NCBI GenBank assembly: GCA_018985225.1
Contig: JADGIF010000077.1
Location: 1 to 22,985, forward strand
Direction of reading: 5' to 3'
DNA length: 22,985 nucleotides
Source of the DNA: Amoeboradix gromovi X-113
Lineage: Eukaryota > Fungi > Sanchytriomycota
The number at the start of each line of letters is the position of its first letter. Position 1 is the stretch's first letter. The position numbers and the translations under genes are program-made. Below are positions 10,736 to 22,343 of the stretch, piece by piece. The notes below the pieces were generated by a model, which saw only the letters and a program-made list of their open reading frames with translations, did not search any database and was not told the origin of the DNA.

Positions 10736-11282
10736 GCCAAATTGTGTGAAGGAGATCATTCTTAGCCCAAATGACATCTGCCTAATGAAAATCGTTTGGC
10801 ACAAGCTCATTGAGACGGGACCTGAAGAGATGAAAGTGGATTTCAAAACTGAAAGAGGGGTTGGGTTTTCAAATGCCCTTGCATCCTTAAAAAGTATCCA
10901 AAACTGTGTGGCACAATTCTTACAGCTTTTGTTATTTATTCAATAAACCATTTTCTTAATTAAATCACAATTCCTTTATATAAAAAGTATTCTGATTGTT
11001 TAAACACTCAATATTCTTCCTTTACCCAAATGAAAAATAGAATCAAATTCTGTAATCCAGAATGTGTTAAATCTAAAGAAATGGTTTAAAGGTAATCCCA
11101 CCTCAAGGTAGCGAAAGCGAGAGCTATCAATGTAACGCAACGACTAAAACTGTTGCTTTCTAAATGGAAATTCTCGATTAACAAGGAAACCAGGACTTTC
11201 AAAGAAAATTTAAGAAATGAGAATGTGATTTATTACAGTAATGGCAGTTGCAGTCGCAGCAGAGATTTTCGCTGCTCTATAA

Positions 11283-11515
11283 TCCTCGTTAAAAGTCTTG
11301 ATTTCCGAGAAAATCGACAATTTCCACAGAGAAACAAGCAATGCTAGATGCTCCGTTACGGTGATTCCTCACGCTTTTCACTACCCTGAGGCGGGATTGA
11401 ATAAGGATGCAGATAATTGATGTATATGTTTCTTGCTGCCATATGGTCTCTATCCATGTCAGTTTCTCAATGTCGATGAGTGTTCAAGTATCTACAAGTT
11501 ATTTATTCAAATCTA
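11283..11515 (+). repeat. Dispersed decayed coding repeat, family 2, fragment 2
   Basis: 11283-11453 is a close inverted match to 21356-21525. About 11454-11515 (CAGTTTCTCAATGTCGATGAGTGT...AGTTATTTATTCAAAT) more distantly resembles about 4686-4740. Confidence 0.88.
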
Positions 11516-11616: not shown

Positions 11617-12089
11617 GGGACACCAAATATAAAAACTAGACTAACTCGTTTTTAAAGGAGGTGCACCATAAGGAGGAAATCATTAATAAAAGATCTTCTT
11701 CTATTATACCAATTTTCTTTCATTGATTGTATTCCTCTTTTTAAAATAAAACTAGAAGACCCTGCATCTCGTTCAAATATATGAGGTCTTTGAGCATCTA
11801 AGTAAAAGGTGCATTTTCTTAGACGGTACTCTTTTCTACAGTCGTTTTGTAATGTTATACTAAAATCATTACTCTTGTCTATTTCTTTGAAGTGTAATAG
11901 TGATATTTTATTTCAAATAAAGATTGTGTAAGAGAATAGCTGTACAGAATATTTATTTTCCTTTTATACTCGTCAACTCCGCAACTAGCTGAATGTCCAC
12001 TCGCCTCTTAGATCCATAACATTAATAAAGCTGAAATAATGTGCCAAATCGTTACAGAAAGTTAGTCCAGTTTTTATATTTGATGTCTC
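11617..12089 (-). mobile_element. Fanzor-associated MITE copy C (473 bp)
   Basis: GGGACACCAAATATAAAAACTAGACTAACT at 11617-11646 and AGTTAGTCCAGTTTTTATATTTGATGTCTC ending at 12089. The minus strand reads FKEIDKSNDFSITLQNDCRKEYRLRKCTFYLDAQRPHIFERDAGSS. Confidence 0.93.
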
Positions 12090-13645: not shown

Positions 13646-14893
13646 TTACGAATTTTCATGTAAGATTCCTTTATCCCATAACTCCTTTGGATAAAATGTA
13701 CATAATACGGTCTTATCGTAGTAAACTTTACCATTAATCTGATCAGCAGCTTCAAAAGCATCCGATTCATTTTCAAATTCAACAAAAACCTTTGGAACTC
13801 CAATCTTTTCTAAAACGCTAGCCGGATTGTCTGGATCAATCCATGTGTTAGGTCTAGGTATCTCAATTTTGACAATTTTCTTCAGCTCTAAACCTACATC
13901 TTTTTTAATTCTTTTTATTTGATCGTCACTGACTACATCACTATCGTCCAGCAAGTTATACAGACACAGAATGTTGGATTTTTCCACTGATAGCTTGTTG
14001 AAAAGCTTGCTGAAGTCAGGGTATCCCTGAGGTATTCCATTTGGCAACATCTTAGCTGGACAGTAAGTCGATTTACTACCAAACAAAGCACGTTGAACGC
14101 CTAATCTACTATTAGATATCTCCATACCATTGAGAGAATTAATTGCAATGTCAGTAAATGTTAAATCTTCATATTCGCAGTAACAATGACCTTTATGATG
14201 TCCATGAGGCCCTTTCTCTAATTCAAAGGCTTTTAAAGGTCCTACAGTATTCAAAAGTTCCTTGATCTGTTCTTCGTTAAAGTCCAGAGGAATGTTTGTG
14301 ACTACAAGTTTATTCTCACTCTCCTCAACGTGATCAGGCATCATCAAATCATCCTTTGTAGGAGCTACGTAGTTGGGTGGACGCGAAAGCAGGATATCCT
14401 GATTCTGAAATTGTATGTTAGTCAGACTAAGAGCATTTGTAGTGTCATTAATGGTGGCAAATTCTACGAACTCATTTGTAACTCGTAAAACTGGTTCAAT
14501 CTTATCATGCGCCAATTTTTCATTCAGAAATACACGCAAAAGCTGTTTATCCAGCTTGTTAGCATTGGATATTCGCAGTCTTTTGGCTTCTCTAAGGCTA
14601 AAATTGCTGGTGTTCAATAAATTAAGTATAAAACCGTATGCAAGATTAAGGCTGGGAAGAATAGTGTCACCATTTTGACGAGCAACGCCCACATGAAATG
14701 GCAAAGGGAAATGTTGAGTCTCTTTGATCGCCGCAGCATTGTCCCAAAATTGTTCATACCCTTCAGGTTTTAAATCCCAATAAAATATACGCCTTTTCCA
14801 ATTCTGGAGGTTGAGCAACTTACCTTGGTCGTCATGTCCATCATGCTGTTTTTTACTAGCTCGTAAAGTTGCTTCTAATTGATCAATGTGCAT
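13646..14893 (-). CDS. U2AF2: U2 snRNP auxiliary factor large subunit (U2AF65 homolog)
   Basis: ULM-like KRRIFYWDLKPEGYE, RRM1 remnant (FVEFAT...RPPNY), RRM2 (NKLVVTNIP...KGHCYCEYED...AINSLNGMEI...LGVQRA) and C-terminal UHM (ILCLYNL...IEIPRP...GVPKVFVEF). Confidence 0.9.
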   Translation of the reverse strand: MHIDQLEATLRASKKQHDGHDDQGKLLNLQNWKRRIFYWDLKPEGYEQFWDNAAAIKETQHFPLPFHVGVARQNGDTILPSLNLAYGFILNLLNTSNFSLREAKRLRISNANKLDKQLLRVFLNEKLAHDKIEPVLRVTNEFVEFATINDTTNALSLTNIQFQNQDILLSRPPNYVAPTKDDLMMPDHVEESENKLVVTNIPLDFNEEQIKELLNTVGPLKAFELEKGPHGHHKGHCYCEYEDLTFTDIAINSLNGMEISNSRLGVQRALFGSKSTYCPAKMLPNGIPQGYPDFSKLFNKLSVEKSNILCLYNLLDDSDVVSDDQIKRIKKDVGLELKKIVKIEIPRPNTWIDPDNPASVLEKIGVPKVFVEFENESDAFEAADQINGKVYYDKTVLCTFYPKELWDKGILHENS

Positions 14894-15089: not shown

Positions 15090-15388
15090 GGGACATCAAA
15101 TATAAAGACTAGACTAACTTTCTGAAGTAGTTTGAGTCATTATTTTAGATGTGTACTAACCAGTACTAAATTAAATTAATCTTATTGGTTACATCTTTTG
15201 CTTAGATGCTCAAAGACCTCATATATTTGAACGAGATGCAGGGTCTTCTTGTTTTATTTAGAAGAGGGGATTGAAAGTAATGAAAGAAAATTGGTATATT
15301 AGAAGATCTTTTATTAATGATAGCATTTCCTCCGTATGGAGCACCTTCTTTAAAAACGGGTTAGTCTAGTTTTTATATTTGGTGTCCC
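15090..15388 (+). mobile_element. Fanzor-associated MITE copy D (299 bp, shortest complete copy)
   Basis: GGGACATCAAATATAAAGACTAGACTAACT at 15090, right TIR ending GGTGTCCC at 15388. Retains FCLDAQRPHIFERDAGSSCFI; lacks the TATA block. Confidence 0.92.
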
Positions 15389-15455
15389 AACTCTTGGCTA
15401 TTTCTCCTTATCAGCCCGTATTGAAATCGATTTTCTCGAATTTCTAGTGTGTCAC

Positions 15456-16475
15456 ATGGAGCACAAACTAATTCTACAGCAATTCAAAGCTCCGATTCGA
15501 CATGCTATAGGATATGGTTCTCGCATATTTCTTCAATCTGACAAGACTAATTCCAAAAAGCAGATAGATTTCATCATTGGTACCACACATGCTGCTCACT
15601 TTCATTCAGTAAACTTGGAGCAATATCCAAAGCATTACAGTTTTCTTCGGCTGTTTGGCAGCGAACCTGTAGCCGCTATTCAACAACAGGGTGCGGGTGT
15701 TTATTATAACACATATTGTAAACATGAAAATAACCATTTCAAGTATGGTGTAGTCACAATTGATCAACTATGCAGTGATCTGATCCAGTGGAACACGTTC
15801 TTTTTTTCTGGAAGATTCCAAAAGCCGGTTCTTACATACTACCAGGATGTCAGAGTGTCCATTGCTAACCAGGTCAACCTGATGAATGCTGTTAGACTAG
15901 CCATTTGTATGAATTATGGCAAATACAATAAATACATAGCTAATTCTCCTAGACCTGGGTGGGACTCATGGGTCGAAATACCATTTGTTGACATTTGTAG
16001 GGAAATTGCCTCTTTTTCATATTATGCTGATTTTAGAACAATTCTTGGGATAGATTCTGGCAAGGTAGATAGTATAGTTAACTATCAGTTGCATTACTTT
16101 AAAACTTTATACCATCCAATTATAAGAAATGGATTATATGACTCAGTAATGATTAAAGATGATTTACTACTATGTAGAGTAGACTCTAAAGTACTAGCTA
16201 AACATTTGACCGAGCTGCCTTCTCATTTTAAATACAAGCTAGCTAGAAGACATTTTAGAGACGAAGGAATAGTCCATCGCGTTCCAGAAAATAATTTATT
16301 AGATGAGACAAAAGTTGGGTTAGACATGCTGGAAGATCCAGCCAGGCTTCGGAAGTTATGCATTAGTTCCCTTAAAAGTATTGGAATTCAACCAAGTTTG
16401 ATTGAGGTTTCCAAGGGGTTACTAAGCGCAGGTGCTGTCAAAAGTTTTAAATATGTGATACAGAAACTAATTTAA
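15456..16475 (+). CDS. TAM41: Mitochondrial phosphatidate cytidylyltransferase Tam41
   Basis: AIGYGSRIFLQ, QIDFI, HFHSVNLEQYPKHYS, GAGVYYN, KYGVV, SGRFQKPV and SYYADFR motifs of the Tam41/Mmp37 family; first ATG at 15456. Confidence 0.93.
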   Translation: MEHKLILQQFKAPIRHAIGYGSRIFLQSDKTNSKKQIDFIIGTTHAAHFHSVNLEQYPKHYSFLRLFGSEPVAAIQQQGAGVYYNTYCKHENNHFKYGVVTIDQLCSDLIQWNTFFFSGRFQKPVLTYYQDVRVSIANQVNLMNAVRLAICMNYGKYNKYIANSPRPGWDSWVEIPFVDICREIASFSYYADFRTILGIDSGKVDSIVNYQLHYFKTLYHPIIRNGLYDSVMIKDDLLLCRVDSKVLAKHLTELPSHFKYKLARRHFRDEGIVHRVPENNLLDETKVGLDMLEDPARLRKLCISSLKSIGIQPSLIEVSKGLLSAGAVKSFKYVIQKLI

Positions 16476-17087: not shown

Positions 17088-17315
17088 CTAAGTTTAATAA
17101 ACAACTCATATCGTAATCACAGCTAGATAATAAACTAAAGTACTTTTTCCTTCAATTTATTTAACTTTTTTATGGTTTGCCTGCGTTAAATGCGAAGATT
17201 TGAAATAAATTGGAGACCTCATTCTCAAATATAACACAACTTAATTTTATACCTAACTTGCGCTAGTTCCATGAGTGAGAGCTACAAATTGTATTTAGTA
17301 AAAAAGAAACACACT

Positions 17316-18283
17316 CTGTAAAAACTAGACTGGCTTTTTATACATTTTATTTCAGATAAATTGTAGTTTCATAATACCTTTACCTAATAGGCTGTTTTTC
17401 ATTTCGTAACCTTGTAGAAGAACTAGTTTTCTTATAAATACAGTCTTTTCTGTAAAACTGTATGGCTAAAAGACGAGAACCTTTTTTCTATAGAAAACGC
17501 AAAAAATAATATCAGACAGTGAAAACACTAAAGAGGGTCCTTTAACTGTTAAAAAGAAGCTAACACGCTAAAAAACTAGGATTAGAGATACATTTCGTCG
17601 TCTTCATCACATAGAGCTTCAATCTCTTCTCTTTTGGAATTGGGTTTTAGAAACCAACAACTACCTAATGATTTTAAACCTTCTCAATACCATGTTACTA
17701 GATTGCAAGGCTTGTTTACTCAAGACTTTAATATTTTTAAAATTAGTAAACTGAGGAGCAGCTTATAGGTGAACTTGTTCAAGAGCAACCCATGCCTATA
17801 TTTAATACAGACCTAAACCAAATGATGGCAGAGTATGACTTGAAAGCTTGGCGTAAAAAAGTCTTCAAAAACAATCTGGTCCAGGTAAAAAGACCCTATT
17901 ACTTTGGGTTGATGGCAAGCTCAATACCAACTTTAAAAAGAACAATTGTAGTCCTTGCCATAGTATTGGAGACTTTTTTGCAAGAGCTTGTAAATCTAAA
18001 GTGGTCTTTGTTCTAGTCAATGAAGATTACATATCCAAGCATTGTAGTGTTTGCAAGTCTTTTATTGACAAATGATATGATACAAACGAAGCTGTTAATA
18101 AATGATAAAACAGAAAAAGTTCGTCTAAGAAAATGCACCTTTTGCTCAGGCGCTTTTAGACCTTGTTACTTTGAACGAGATACTGGGTCTTCTTGTTTTA
18201 ATTTAAAGAGGAGTAGATTTATTAAAATCAATCTTTTCTCTGTATGGGGTCTCCTTAAAAATAACTTGGTCTAGTTTTTACAG
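17316..18283 (+). mobile_element. Non-autonomous TIR element carrying a decayed Fanzor gene
   Basis: Perfect 15-bp inverted repeat CTGTAAAAACTAGAC (17316-17330) / GTCTAGTTTTTACAG (18269-18283), sharing the core TAAAAACTAGAC with the MITE TIR. About 18120-18280 is homologous to the MITE right halves. Confidence 0.85.
17462..18274 (+). pseudogene. Fanzor1 (eukaryotic TnpB homolog) pseudogene, frameshifted and internally deleted
   Basis: The frame starting at 17881 reads PGKKTLLLWVDGKLNTNFKKNNCSPCHSIGDFFARACKSKVVFVLVNEDYISKHCSVCK. After a frameshift it reads VRLRKCTFCSGAFRPCYFERDTGSS. This fits the TnpB/Fanzor pattern VxExxTSxxCxxC...CxxC...RD. TATAAATA at 17433 and ATG at 17462 (MAKRREPFFYRKRKK) lie upstream. 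RuvC-I is not seen. Confidence 0.85.
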
Positions 18284-18300
18284 TATATTCTATTTATTCT

Positions 18301-20682
18301 TTATCCTTCTTGCCTATTTATATATATTTTCCCACTCGTCCAAGTCTCTTTTCCATCATTAAATGGTTTGTTTACGATAATCTTTACAAAATATTCACCG
18401 TCTTCCAAACTTTTCCAATTGACTTTCCCAGCATCCATTGACTTACTATAACAGGCAACACAGCTCCCGTACACCCATGGAATCTGTAGTAAATATTTAA
18501 ATGCCTGATCCTTATCATAACTGCTATATGTCCTAGATAATGCCTGCTGCTGATAGACGTACCCAATTCTCTTGTTGTCTTTATACAATTCGATGGTTAA
18601 TAATGGACTCGGTTGCAAGACTCTTAATTGAAATACAATGGTTCCGTTGTATGTGAAGTCGGCACTTATCACATCAGTTGCATTGTGTATTCCACTAAAC
18701 GGATCATCCAATCTTCCACTTGTTATAACATTAGGAAATATGCCATCATTGCCCAAAACACTAGCACTTTTCAAGGATCCCTTGTATCCCATGTATGGTA
18801 CACTAATTGGATGTGCATTGATGTTGTTGACTGGTATAAGTTGAATATATCCACTGTATATCCATTTTTCATAATTACTCAGCCATGGCGGGAATATACG
18901 CACATTTATGGATCTAGATTGTTTGCTCTTTACAGTGATGTATCGATCAACCAATACCTTACTAAAGGCTGCCTTGGTAGCAACACTCCCAAATTTATCA
19001 CCATTTATACTCAATGCAGGTATGTGCTTTACTCTGAACTTGACTGACTTGTCGTCATTGTTGCTGATACTTATTTTTTTGTATTTGTATAACGAGTACC
19101 ACTTTTGATCTAGTAGTTCTAGTTTGCAAGGGCTAGCAGAGACTGGATTGAATAACACTTTTGTTGCATTAACTAACCCGGCGCCTTGTTTGATCACCGG
19201 ATACACTCCATTGTTACTACTAATTTCGCCGTTATTCATAAGCAATTCCTTCATTCTATAGCTACTAACGGGACCATGCAATCCTATGTACAATGCCACC
19301 ACTCCACTTATGTACGGTGCGCTCATTGAGGTACCTGAAAGTATTCCATACTTACCTTGGTCCAATGGTAAAGAAGAGAAAACAGCACCACCAACACCGG
19401 CTGCCTCTGGCTTCAGCTGCAGTAAACTACCAGGACCCCAACTGCTAAAATCAGAAGGATATCCACTAGCAGTAGATATTTGCTGCGACTTTTTGTCAGT
19501 GACTGCAATAGTCCCCTTTTTAACTCTGAGCAATTGACCATCCAATCCAGATAACAAGTAAACACCCACTGCAAAAGACGAGTCTTGATACCCAGTACTA
19601 AATGGACCATCAGATAGATTATAAAGCAGTACCAATCCAGCACCGGCTTTGATAGCATTGTTAATTTTATCACTTAATGGACAGCTTCCTCTTTTAATTA
19701 AAACCGCATCGTCTGAGTTAAACTTGTAAGAGTAAGGCATACAACCGTCGTTGGATACCTCAGTTGGACTGCTAACAGCAATATTGTACTTTCCCGTTCC
19801 TTCGTTTACTATCTCTGCACTAATAGAGGATTCACCGGACTGAAGCTGCTGGTAATTCAAGAATATTTTGTTATTAAAACTAGCAACACTTATGGCAGAT
19901 TTAGAAATAGCAGGAGAACCTCCCATGAACAAGCCATCTGCACCTTCATTACCCTGAGATATCACAACAATTAATCCTAATTCGCTTAAACGGTCGATTA
20001 ACCTGCAATACGGTCTGTTATCCCAACCTGACCAACTGCCAAGAGAGAGGTTAATGACATGCATACCATCATGATAAGCTAGCTCCATTGCACGCATTAT
20101 GATTGATTCCCTAGCACCACCCTTACATGGGAACACTTTATACACAGCCAACTCAGCTTGTGGCGCCACGCCTGTAAACAGCTCATCTTTACCGGCGACG
20201 ATGCCACTCACATGAGTACCGTGCTCATTGCAATTGTCCATCGGGTATTCATCTTCAGTAAATCCGTCGTCACCAGTAAAATCGTAACCATTAATGACCT
20301 TACAACCAGGAGACTTGAAACAGCTACCGAAAGCAGGATGATTGTAGTCTATTCCGGTATCAACAACACCTACCTTTGCACCATGACCATAATGGCCGCT
20401 TTCATGCAATTTAGACACACCAGTGAGTTCATGAATGGCGTTGTTCACAGTGATGTTTGAGTATGCAATTTGTATATCAGGTCTAGGAGCATCCACAACT
20501 ATGTCTTCCCATACATTCTTAACGCCTTTTAAGCTGCTTAGAGTTAAAATGGATTCACTGGAATCTATCACAACTGTATCGGACAACTTGAACTTGTAAA
20601 CGGTTTTGATACTTGTGGGAAGTTTATACGATGCATTTAGTTCTACAATGTACTGTTTAGAAAGCACTAATGTAAGAAGCAT
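18301..20682 (-). CDS. Subtilisin-like S8 serine peptidase with PA insert and C-terminal Fn3-like domain
   Basis: Catalytic triad VGVVDTG, HGTHVSG and GTSMSAP; oxyanion SQGNEG; PA motif LIKRGSC; KQGAGLVN. First ATG at 20682. Confidence 0.95.
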   Translation of the reverse strand: MLLTLVLSKQYIVELNASYKLPTSIKTVYKFKLSDTVVIDSSESILTLSSLKGVKNVWEDIVVDAPRPDIQIAYSNITVNNAIHELTGVSKLHESGHYGHGAKVGVVDTGIDYNHPAFGSCFKSPGCKVINGYDFTGDDGFTEDEYPMDNCNEHGTHVSGIVAGKDELFTGVAPQAELAVYKVFPCKGGARESIIMRAMELAYHDGMHVINLSLGSWSGWDNRPYCRLIDRLSELGLIVVISQGNEGADGLFMGGSPAISKSAISVASFNNKIFLNYQQLQSGESSISAEIVNEGTGKYNIAVSSPTEVSNDGCMPYSYKFNSDDAVLIKRGSCPLSDKINNAIKAGAGLVLLYNLSDGPFSTGYQDSSFAVGVYLLSGLDGQLLRVKKGTIAVTDKKSQQISTASGYPSDFSSWGPGSLLQLKPEAAGVGGAVFSSLPLDQGKYGILSGTSMSAPYISGVVALYIGLHGPVSSYRMKELLMNNGEISSNNGVYPVIKQGAGLVNATKVLFNPVSASPCKLELLDQKWYSLYKYKKISISNNDDKSVKFRVKHIPALSINGDKFGSVATKAAFSKVLVDRYITVKSKQSRSINVRIFPPWLSNYEKWIYSGYIQLIPVNNINAHPISVPYMGYKGSLKSASVLGNDGIFPNVITSGRLDDPFSGIHNATDVISADFTYNGTIVFQLRVLQPSPLLTIELYKDNKRIGYVYQQQALSRTYSSYDKDQAFKYLLQIPWVYGSCVACYSKSMDAGKVNWKSLEDGEYFVKIIVNKPFNDGKETWTSGKIYINRQEG

Positions 20683-20843
20683 CTGTAGAGTAGGAACCAA
20701 AGAATAAATAAGTTTGATATTGGCGAATGATGGTGCGATTATGTAGAATTGTGATTAATCACTCGATAAGAAATATCCAAAATGATGGAATATGGCAAAA
20801 CTTTTTGACATGTTAAGTACCTATCAAAGAAGTTTGTGCGATT

Positions 20844-21525
20844 TTAAATTTCCAATGCTTTTTTTGATTTTTCACGCATTGGCCTCGCCGATTTGGTAGA
20901 TTTAACAGAGTTTTTCAAGTTATTACGCTGAAACACAATTTGTATTTTCTTTGCTTTAGTGTTGGGTTGTGGTGTTACTTTTGGATGTTTAAAACCTTCA
21001 GGCAGATAATACCTTACGGTGCTAGCACCAAGAAACAATCCACTGCCATAAACAGCTCGATTGTTTTCTTGAATAAATCATTTATCGCGAATTTGTATGT
21101 ATTTTTGTATAATTTCATGACTTCCAGATTTTTCCAATAGCCTAAAAACTCGATATTCTTCCTTTTCACAAGTGGTAAATCAAATCTAAAGAAATAACTA
21201 GCAGGTAAAGCATACATTCATCAACACTGAGGAACTGGTCCAAGCATGGAACAATTAGATGCCTTTTAATACCCAGAAAGAGATCAACGATAAATAAACC
21301 TGTAAACCATTTATTTAATAATTAGTATGCTCTTGGTCTTACAATATGTGCAACAATAGAGACCATATGGCAGCAAGGAACATATACATCAAGTGTCTGC
21401 ATCCTTATTCAACCCCGCCTCAGGGTAGTGAAAGCGTGAGCAATCACTGTAACGGAGCATCTAGCATTGCTAGTTTCTCTGTGGAAATTCTCAATTTTCT
21501 CGGAAATCAGGACTTTTAACGAGGA
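20844..21525 (-). pseudogene. Decayed coding repeat, family 2, longest fragment (probable transposon-gene remnant)
   Basis: Contains in series the segments matching 11283-11453 and 4601-4862, with broken reading frames on the minus strand. The lower boundary is approximate. Confidence 0.7.
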
Positions 21526-21896: not shown

Positions 21897-22343
21897 GAGA
21901 CATCAAATATAAAAACTGGACTAACTTTCTGTAACAACTTAGCACATTATTTCAGCTTTATTAATTTTATGGATTCAAGAGGCGAGTAGACATTCAGCTA
22001 GTTGCGGAGTTGACGAGTATAAAAGGAAAATAAATATTCTGTACAGCTATTCTCTTACTCTTTCATCCAATCTTTATTTCAAATAAACCTCTGATTCATA
22101 ATACTAATTCATAATAGGGTATATTTTCATTTAAGAACTGTCTTGCCCATAAATAGAGACCTTTCCTAATAAAGTTATGGCCAAGAGAACGAGATGCAGG
22201 GTCTTCTAGTTTTATTTTGAAGAGAGGATTGAAAGTAATGAAAGAAAATTGGTATAATAGAAGATCTTTTATTAATGATAGCATTTCCTCCGTATGGTGA
22301 ACCTTTAAAAACGAGTTAGTCTAGTTTTTATATTTGGTGTCCC
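21897..22343 (+). mobile_element. Fanzor-associated MITE copy E (447 bp) with 4-bp TSD AGTA
   Basis: AGTA|GAGACATCAAATATAAAAACTGGACTAACT ... AGTTAGTCTAGTTTTTATATTTGGTGTCCC|AGTA. Confidence 0.94.

Follow-up and report, generated by a model that had tools for sequence, protein, structure and literature searches.

The natural role of Fanzor proteins in eukaryotes, to restore excised transposons, is still deduced mainly from bacteria. One of the closest described systems is SpuFz1 of Spizellomyces punctatus, which resides in Spu-1, a TIR element of about 2 kb with a single ORF of Fanzor1 fold and no transposase, and which is accompanied by ghost loci (PMC10432273). Spu-1 has a CA conserved upstream of its left end, the TAM of SpuFz1 is formed by CA and the TA duplication, and the element has many protein-less derivatives (42 + 134 loci; PMC10432273). 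Fanzor1 genes are also known from the Sola2-Fanzor1 elements DFa-1/2/3 of Dictyostelium fasciculatum and PPa-1/4/5 of Polysphondylium pallidum, which have Sola-type ends and 4-bp A/T-rich TSDs, are 10–15 kb long and intron-rich, encode Fanzors of 1,000–1,800 aa and often a transposase, and occur in 2–12 copies (PMC3627910). Moreover, the Fanzor1 of the insect virus SfAV-1 measures about 600 aa and is carried by a non-autonomous element of about 1.95 kb with 13-bp TIRs, a 4-bp TSD and a TTTAN target; one more upstream base is conserved, and TIR and TSD are included in the RNA scaffold (10.1101/2023.08.09.552727). Known Fanzor1 systems use the 5' TSD within the TAM and the 3' TSD within the scaffold (PMC13565253; 10.1101/2023.08.09.552727).

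We analysed a stretch of 22,985 nt (termed the window) from Amoeboradix gromovi, whose genome is eukaryotic, 10.5 Mb in size and intron-poor. The window carries a degraded member of an element family which resembles Spu-1 in its single-ORF TIR architecture of about 2 kb without transposase, in its Fanzor1 fold, in the CA upstream of the left end and in its many protein-less derivatives. It differs from Spu-1 in having a probable 4-bp ANNT duplication of variable sequence instead of TA, in an ORF that enters the TIR, so that scaffold and coding end have to overlap, and in its ~780 elements in 10.5 Mb; at the level of models, SpuFz1 and the family share 11–14% sequence identity. With the DFa and PPa elements it has the Fanzor1 gene, the Sola-type ends and probably the 4-bp A/T-rich TSDs in common, but it measures 2 kb, is intronless, encodes a protein of ~600 aa and would depend on a transposase in trans. 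It is similar to the SfAV-1 element in protein and element length, non-autonomy, probable TSD length, the additional conserved upstream base and the predicted inclusion of TIR and TSD in the RNA scaffold, whereas the target here is (A)CANNT and the GRG TIRs are ~30 bp long. Fanzor1 in Sola elements, ghost loci and the upstream CA are already published. The clade, its number of copies and a gapped target rule that can be read directly seem not to have been described in the literature we searched, in which we found nothing that joins Fanzor with a sanchytrid or names DUF7869. At a probability of roughly 80%, we favour a joint explanation in which the locus is a Fanzor1 deletion relic that would have been mobilised in trans by a Sola-like mover, with TAM and guide modelled by analogy to the known systems.

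The Fanzor1 remnant and its relatives

The initial annotation had described a Fanzor1 relic in a TIR element at 17316–18283. A TIR element is indeed present, but these limits mark the inner TIR only (15/16 complementary). Comparison with sibling copies places the true start at 17306, giving a span of 17306–18283, and reveals a right TIR that lacks its outer ~10 bp. The left TIR (17306–17331, plus strand) is of the B subfamily and begins with GAA instead of the consensus GAG; the truncated right TIR occupies 18268–18283 (plus strand). Six-frame translation and codon checks recovered every residue that had been named, i.e. Glu at 18022, the Cys pairs at 18043/18052 and 18134/18143, and Asp at 18179. 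The frame starting at 17881 reads LLLWVDG...VVFVLVNEDYISKHCSVC and continues beyond the frameshift with RLRKCTFC...FERD. The proposed reading of a frame at 17881–18072 followed by a frameshift holds, with the correction that a stop at 18070 precedes the frameshift. The ORF calls at 17792 and 18020 mask the real frame, as had been suspected, and are both alternative frames over the frameshift-broken gene.

The N-terminal part of the gene, which the initial annotation had overlooked, is also kept (17462–17756, plus strand). It comprises ~100 codons starting with the ATG at 17462, contains frameshifts and a stop, and aligns with aa 24–111 of the metagenomic protein P0003 and with copies C33 and L082. 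At an internal deletion junction (17756/17757, plus strand) the gene picks up again at aa ~245 of a genomic paralogue termed L035, and therefore ~350 codons including the RuvC-I DPG are gone, in agreement with the earlier proposal that the middle of the gene had been deleted. Next comes a remnant ahead of the WGDG strand (17757–17890, plus strand), which corresponds to L035 aa ~245–287 and accounts for the ORF call at 17792. The RuvC-II region (17866–18096, plus strand) holds the strand itself, in which WVDG is a decayed WGDG (WGD in four sibling copies), as well as the catalytic Glu, the first CxxC and the stop at 18070. The second CxxC, the RuvC-III RD and the C-terminus follow at 18122–18274 (plus strand), in a frame that terminates at a TAG within the right TIR. 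The arrangement E-x6-CxxC then CxxC-x(5-20)-RD within 250 nt was produced by none of 2000 shuffles of the element. These results confirm that 17306–18283 is a non-autonomous TIR element with N- and C-terminal Fanzor1 remains. Since RuvC-I is absent, the frame is broken several times and the right end is truncated, no nuclease is made: the copy is an inert fossil, which is probably immobile and probably makes no functional guide.

Exactly the same junction is found in five genomic copies, the window copy and its siblings on contigs C632, C389, C819 and C821, which are 89–95% identical; a further copy (C1071) retains 245 bp more at the deletion. Thus, the dead form has itself been copied, which requires a transposase in trans. 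This shows that the locus is a ~980-bp deletion derivative of a ~2-kb Fanzor1-only TIR element, that, once the deletion had occurred, it was copied no fewer than five times, and that it was moved in trans.

A genome search with a 63-aa piece of the window copy retrieved L035 (contig C1157; 69% identity), a 436-aa stop-free frame that is cut by the contig start. L035 contains FIGIDPG (RuvC-I DPG at aa 125), WGDG, NESYTSKHCSVC, CTFC and ERD. Another copy (C33) is 1.66 kb long and has both ends and RuvC-I, but it carries stops and its REC part is deleted. Of the intact relatives that had been predicted elsewhere in the genome, less damaged copies of this kind were found, but no complete intact gene of the focal subfamily is present in the assembly, where the cut copy on C1157 is the best one; assembly may have collapsed an intact gene. 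In the genome match tables, long frames free of stops do turn up for other Fanzor1-like subfamilies, on C363 (693 aa) and C1184 (748 aa). These two frames (C363:1478-3364 and C1184:3833-5710) match P0016 at 41%, belong to another subfamily with fragments of its own (62 matches) and possibly encode intact nucleases. A third Fanzor1 subfamily comprises L060 (C574:~8550-9870), C1001, C133 and C490; it is nearer to metagenomic P0003 (53–62%) than to the focal family, and its end type is alike.

Relatives outside the genome are few and metagenomic, P0003 (616 aa), P0006 (585 aa) and P0007 (642 aa), with 31–42% identity; the next-closest proteins are canonical Fanzor1-like (~28–31%). In a tree calculated without named reference sequences, these three proteins and the genomic copies form a supported clade (99/98). 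Neither P0003 nor L035 retrieved a relative in scans of viral contigs. L035, P0003, P0006 and P0007 all conform to the pattern that has been published for Fanzor1, DPG-x(120,280)-E-x6-[CH]xxC...C...RD (10.1101/2023.08.09.552727). The window copy has lost the DPG, which is present in the other four, through the deletion; it retains the RuvC-II Glu six residues ahead of the zinc finger (Glu 18022/Cys 18043; E340 in L035) and the C4 zinc finger followed by the RuvC-III RD. The Asn usually found five residues past the RD is missing in the focal clade (L035, P0003, P0006 and P0007). When the PDB was searched with a family profile, SpuFz1 was the best match (E 1.2e-4), with RuvC-I, II and III aligned, and a single-sequence PDB search with L035 gave no match. 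Foldseek searches with a model of P0003 (pLDDT 67) recovered seven Fanzor1 chains from SpuFz1, PpFz1 and GtFz1 (E 5e-8 to 2e-6), and Fanzor2 and Cas12f only at E 0.02 or worse. For the L035 model SpuFz1 ranks first, with Cas12f close behind.

The checks that the initial annotation had proposed, a genome search with the peptide and a structural comparison, led to L035 and to models that match SpuFz1 best or among the best, and motifs, profile search and model comparison together uphold the Fanzor1 identity. It is very improbable that the gene instead belongs to Fanzor2 or encodes an unrelated zinc-finger protein. In VIA-align, Fanzor2 (Z 8.8) and TnpB (8.5) score about as high as GtFz1 (9.2), and Pfam TNB scores stay under the cut-off; the pieces of the window copy, searched separately with their frames unstitched, gave a weak TNB match only (E 0.13). 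Foldseek and HMM searches, however, prefer Fanzor1 by orders of magnitude, and the length of ~600 aa and the TIRs without serine recombinase also speak against Fanzor2. The hallmark of Fanzor2/IS607 is a serine recombinase and no TIRs, and the full-length elements that we read contain no recombinase frame. Moreover, the real Fanzor2-like family of this genome is a separate one without TIR. The combined evidence supports the window gene being a Fanzor1 fossil of a divergent clade with Sola-like ends.

Family ends and candidate mobiliser

The ends of the family have the form GRG...CYC and share GRGACA...TGTCYC. A-type TIRs yielded 803 + 770 matches (1,573), none of them in the reversed control, and B-type TIRs, the type of the window element, 105 + 102, likewise with none in the reversed controls. 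The ~1,570 matches correspond to ~780 elements in the 10.5-Mb genome. Besides the B-type copy, the window harbours four complete A-type miniatures of ~390 bp (9154–9545, plus strand), 473 bp (11617–12089, minus strand), 299 bp (15090–15388, plus strand) and 447 bp (21897–22343, plus strand; perfect 4-bp TSD, C|AGTA...AGTA), as well as the left end of a further relative that is cut by the contig start (1–181, minus strand). Twelve complete miniatures were checked; they measure 299–672 bp and are nearly all unequal in length. All twelve retain the 3' end of the ORF (150–330 nt), together with 60–370 nt of the left end, and their internal junctions nearly all differ. Left and right halves of the miniatures, compared in a test for mosaicism, gave rho 0.29 (p 0.06). 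The distant relatives L060, L079 and L084 share this type of end and likewise have CA upstream. The element encoding P0007 has a right TIR identical to that of the family but a T at -5 in both of its left flanks, from which a different TAM would be expected for P0007. A 51-bp element at L089:2132-2182 consists of two overlapping family TIRs only, flanked by AAGT and AATT.

The Pfam domain DUF7869 has 29 matches in the genome and none in 14 prokaryotic controls. On contig C488, a 4.2-kb DUF7869 element with GGG...CCC ends is nested in a Fanzor1 copy. Its TIR resembles the B TIR, it is flanked by C|AATT...AATT, and a paralogue has the single-copy (empty) site; in this one example read, TIRs are common to the family and a DDD-transposase element. 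We take its motifs FDYSQN, HADNCxGQNKN and GHTKFxPDxxFG to be Sola-like, and the Sola label for DUF7869 comes from these motifs together with the ANNT duplication of 4 bp instead of from a name in a database. Sola elements produce 4-bp, AWWT-like duplications (PMC10741241, PMC3845634). The Sola-like DUF7869 transposase is the likely mobiliser of the family. No element uniting transposase and Fanzor was seen, that on C488 being a nested insertion. On C781, C367, C567 and C766, DUF7869 matches and B-type TIR matches are 1.8–3.5 kb apart and oriented accordingly, which suggests that there may be further transposase elements with B-type ends.

Target motif, predicted guide and rival explanations

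CANNN precedes 281 of ~297 exact left ends (~95%; the left-end patterns behind this count differ by 1–2 inner bases), compared to a CA background of 6.6%, and ACANNN precedes 223 of them (~75%). By hand count, T is the last base in ~3/4 of the listed left flanks. A is the first base in 36 of 37 right flanks, metagenomic L085 being the exception; T is found at +4 in ~60% and G at +5 in only ~30%. Since C occupies -5 in ~95% of left ends and G occupies +5 in ~30% of right flanks, the rule is one-sided. The window copy has no C in this flank (AAAAA); its siblings have CAAAA and CATAT. In a B-type copy (L003; C389 ~7965), an A-type element is joined by its left end directly to the right TSD ATAT, and a CANNN target is thereby formed by the B-type element's own end. 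By analogy with the known systems, the (A)CANNN bias would predict the TAM. At every occupied right end the last C of the element and the first A of the TSD recreate CANNN before the guide. Base -6 is A at ~79% of the CANNN left ends and C or T at right junctions, and because CANNN is rebuilt at occupied ends, this base is a probable self/non-self discriminator. Guide targets elsewhere in the retrieved loci were almost only self-junctions.

The stop codon lies within the TIR in L035, P0007 and the window copy, and 8–11 nt from the element end in P0003, P0006 and P0009. Thus, an omegaRNA scaffold, if there is one, has to extend over the end of the coding sequence. In the window, the putative scaffold region, consisting of ORF 3' end and TIR (18176–18283, plus strand), is the portion that all miniature copies retain. 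Over the last ~50 nt, the TIR can pair with sequence upstream of it into a possible hairpin (92% of cells paired vs 40–55% in slid controls), with changes in the inner stem being mostly A-to-G and preserving G-U pairs. Covariation is weak, with one pair changed on both sides and 27–92 of 500 shuffles scoring as high, and the folding of some copies does not surpass that of shuffles. The window copy has lost the outer hairpin stem, and the terminal stem of the region is destroyed in it. The hairpin is suggestive of a predicted omegaRNA scaffold. An Rfam search of the right end gave no match, and a bacterial promoter scan, irrelevant here, stayed at chance level.

In the mechanism that we propose, the Sola-like DDD transposase (DUF7869) would recognise the GRGACA...TGTCYC ends and insert the element at 5'-(A)C|ANNT, duplicating 4 bp. 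In intact parents, transcription of an omegaRNA would pass over the ORF 3' end, the right TIR and the 3' TSD and continue into the flanking DNA, the guide beginning past the 3' TSD; this step is modelled on SpuFz1 and the insect-virus Fanzor1. Fanzor would then cut the empty donor site, where the 5' TSD and the upstream AC would serve as TAM ahead of the guide match, and sister-chromatid repair would restore the element. The hundreds of miniatures would be 'ghost' loci that retain both ends and the scaffold region.

The relic might also be a Fanzor1 in a family where ACANNN is a mere transposase target preference and the miniatures give no guide RNA. Their retained 3' end would then reflect cis needs of transposition or abortive gap repair, and we regard both parts of this account as possible but rather unlikely. 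It would fit with the nested transposase element also sitting at AC|AATT, with the miniatures keeping left ends and differing in their junctions, and with the weak covariation of the hairpin. The one-sidedness of the bias, however, speaks against it, as it is not predicted for a symmetric transposase alone, and so do the mostly A-to-G changes of the inner stem, which preserve G-U pairs, and the working omegaRNAs of published ghost loci (PMC10432273). A bolder and improbable reading takes the ~800 miniatures as a live genome-wide guide library, which a surviving Fanzor1 would use in trans with a gapped TAM (ACANNN). Since the last C and the 3' TSD rebuild CANNN, only base -6 would then tell an empty site from an occupied one. 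Flanks would be swapped through leaky self-cutting and repair between copies, which would explain unmatched TSDs, and the system would be an engine of genome rearrangement.

Perfect 4-bp TSDs flank the copies on C389 and C196, the window miniature at 21897 and metagenomic L079, in addition to the nested element on C488. Among the twelve complete miniatures, however, only two have one, which is not above permuted flanks (p 0.12–0.17), and ten are mismatched, with the ANNT bias seen on both flanks. The retrieved loci include no empty sites of miniatures, and the contigs of the only sequencing run break inside the miniature at 15090. It could be argued from the ten unmatched pairs that insertion occurs without TSD between CANNN and ANNN, in a non-DDE or Fanzor-assisted manner, and that matching TSDs are due to chance. 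We consider this quite improbable, since the nested DUF7869 element is flanked by a perfect TSD whose empty site is present in a paralogue, the TSDs of C389 and L079 are perfect as well, and the same bias on both flanks is that of transposase-made junctions from different events or mis-joins. Because both flanks look transposase-made, we favour flanks from different events, joined by assembler mis-joins or by recombination between copies. With ~780 elements derived from Fanzor1, a candidate transposase and a rule for the target taken from ~300 insertions, this small genome makes TAM-target co-evolution directly testable. The clade is divergent and compact (~600 aa), with intact metagenomic members (P0003, P0006 and P0007), and its predicted unusual gapped TAM might be of use in genome editing.

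Neighbouring genes and other repeats

The window element has a 162-aa gene without annotation on one side and a subtilase gene (18301–20700, minus strand) on the other. Further host genes in the window encode a HECT-like ligase (2025–4346, minus strand), a short-chain dehydrogenase-like protein (9776–10846, minus strand), a U2AF65-like RRM protein (13646–14893, minus strand) and Tam41 (15447–16475, plus strand). All five named genes are without evident introns, and the subtilase, U2AF65-like and Tam41 genes were checked with Pfam. A second repeat family, distinct from the first and descended from a Fanzor2/IS607-TnpB-like gene, is found in the window at 4601–4862, 10978–11453 and 21046–21524, at L016:801-1378 and in L047. 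It has a Cas12f1-like TNB domain (E 3e-18 in L016), the motif RDHMAARNI, a right end finishing with GG and no TIR. PF07282 has 560 candidates in the genome, and C542 contains a 672-aa stop-free frame.

Intact relatives (L079-L081, L084, L086-L091) are located on gene-dense intronless contigs, which encode a dCMP deaminase, a U-box protein, an AAA_25 helicase and repeat proteins and look like giant-virus DNA. The P0007 element is multicopy there, and one of its copies follows the end of a histone H3-like gene.
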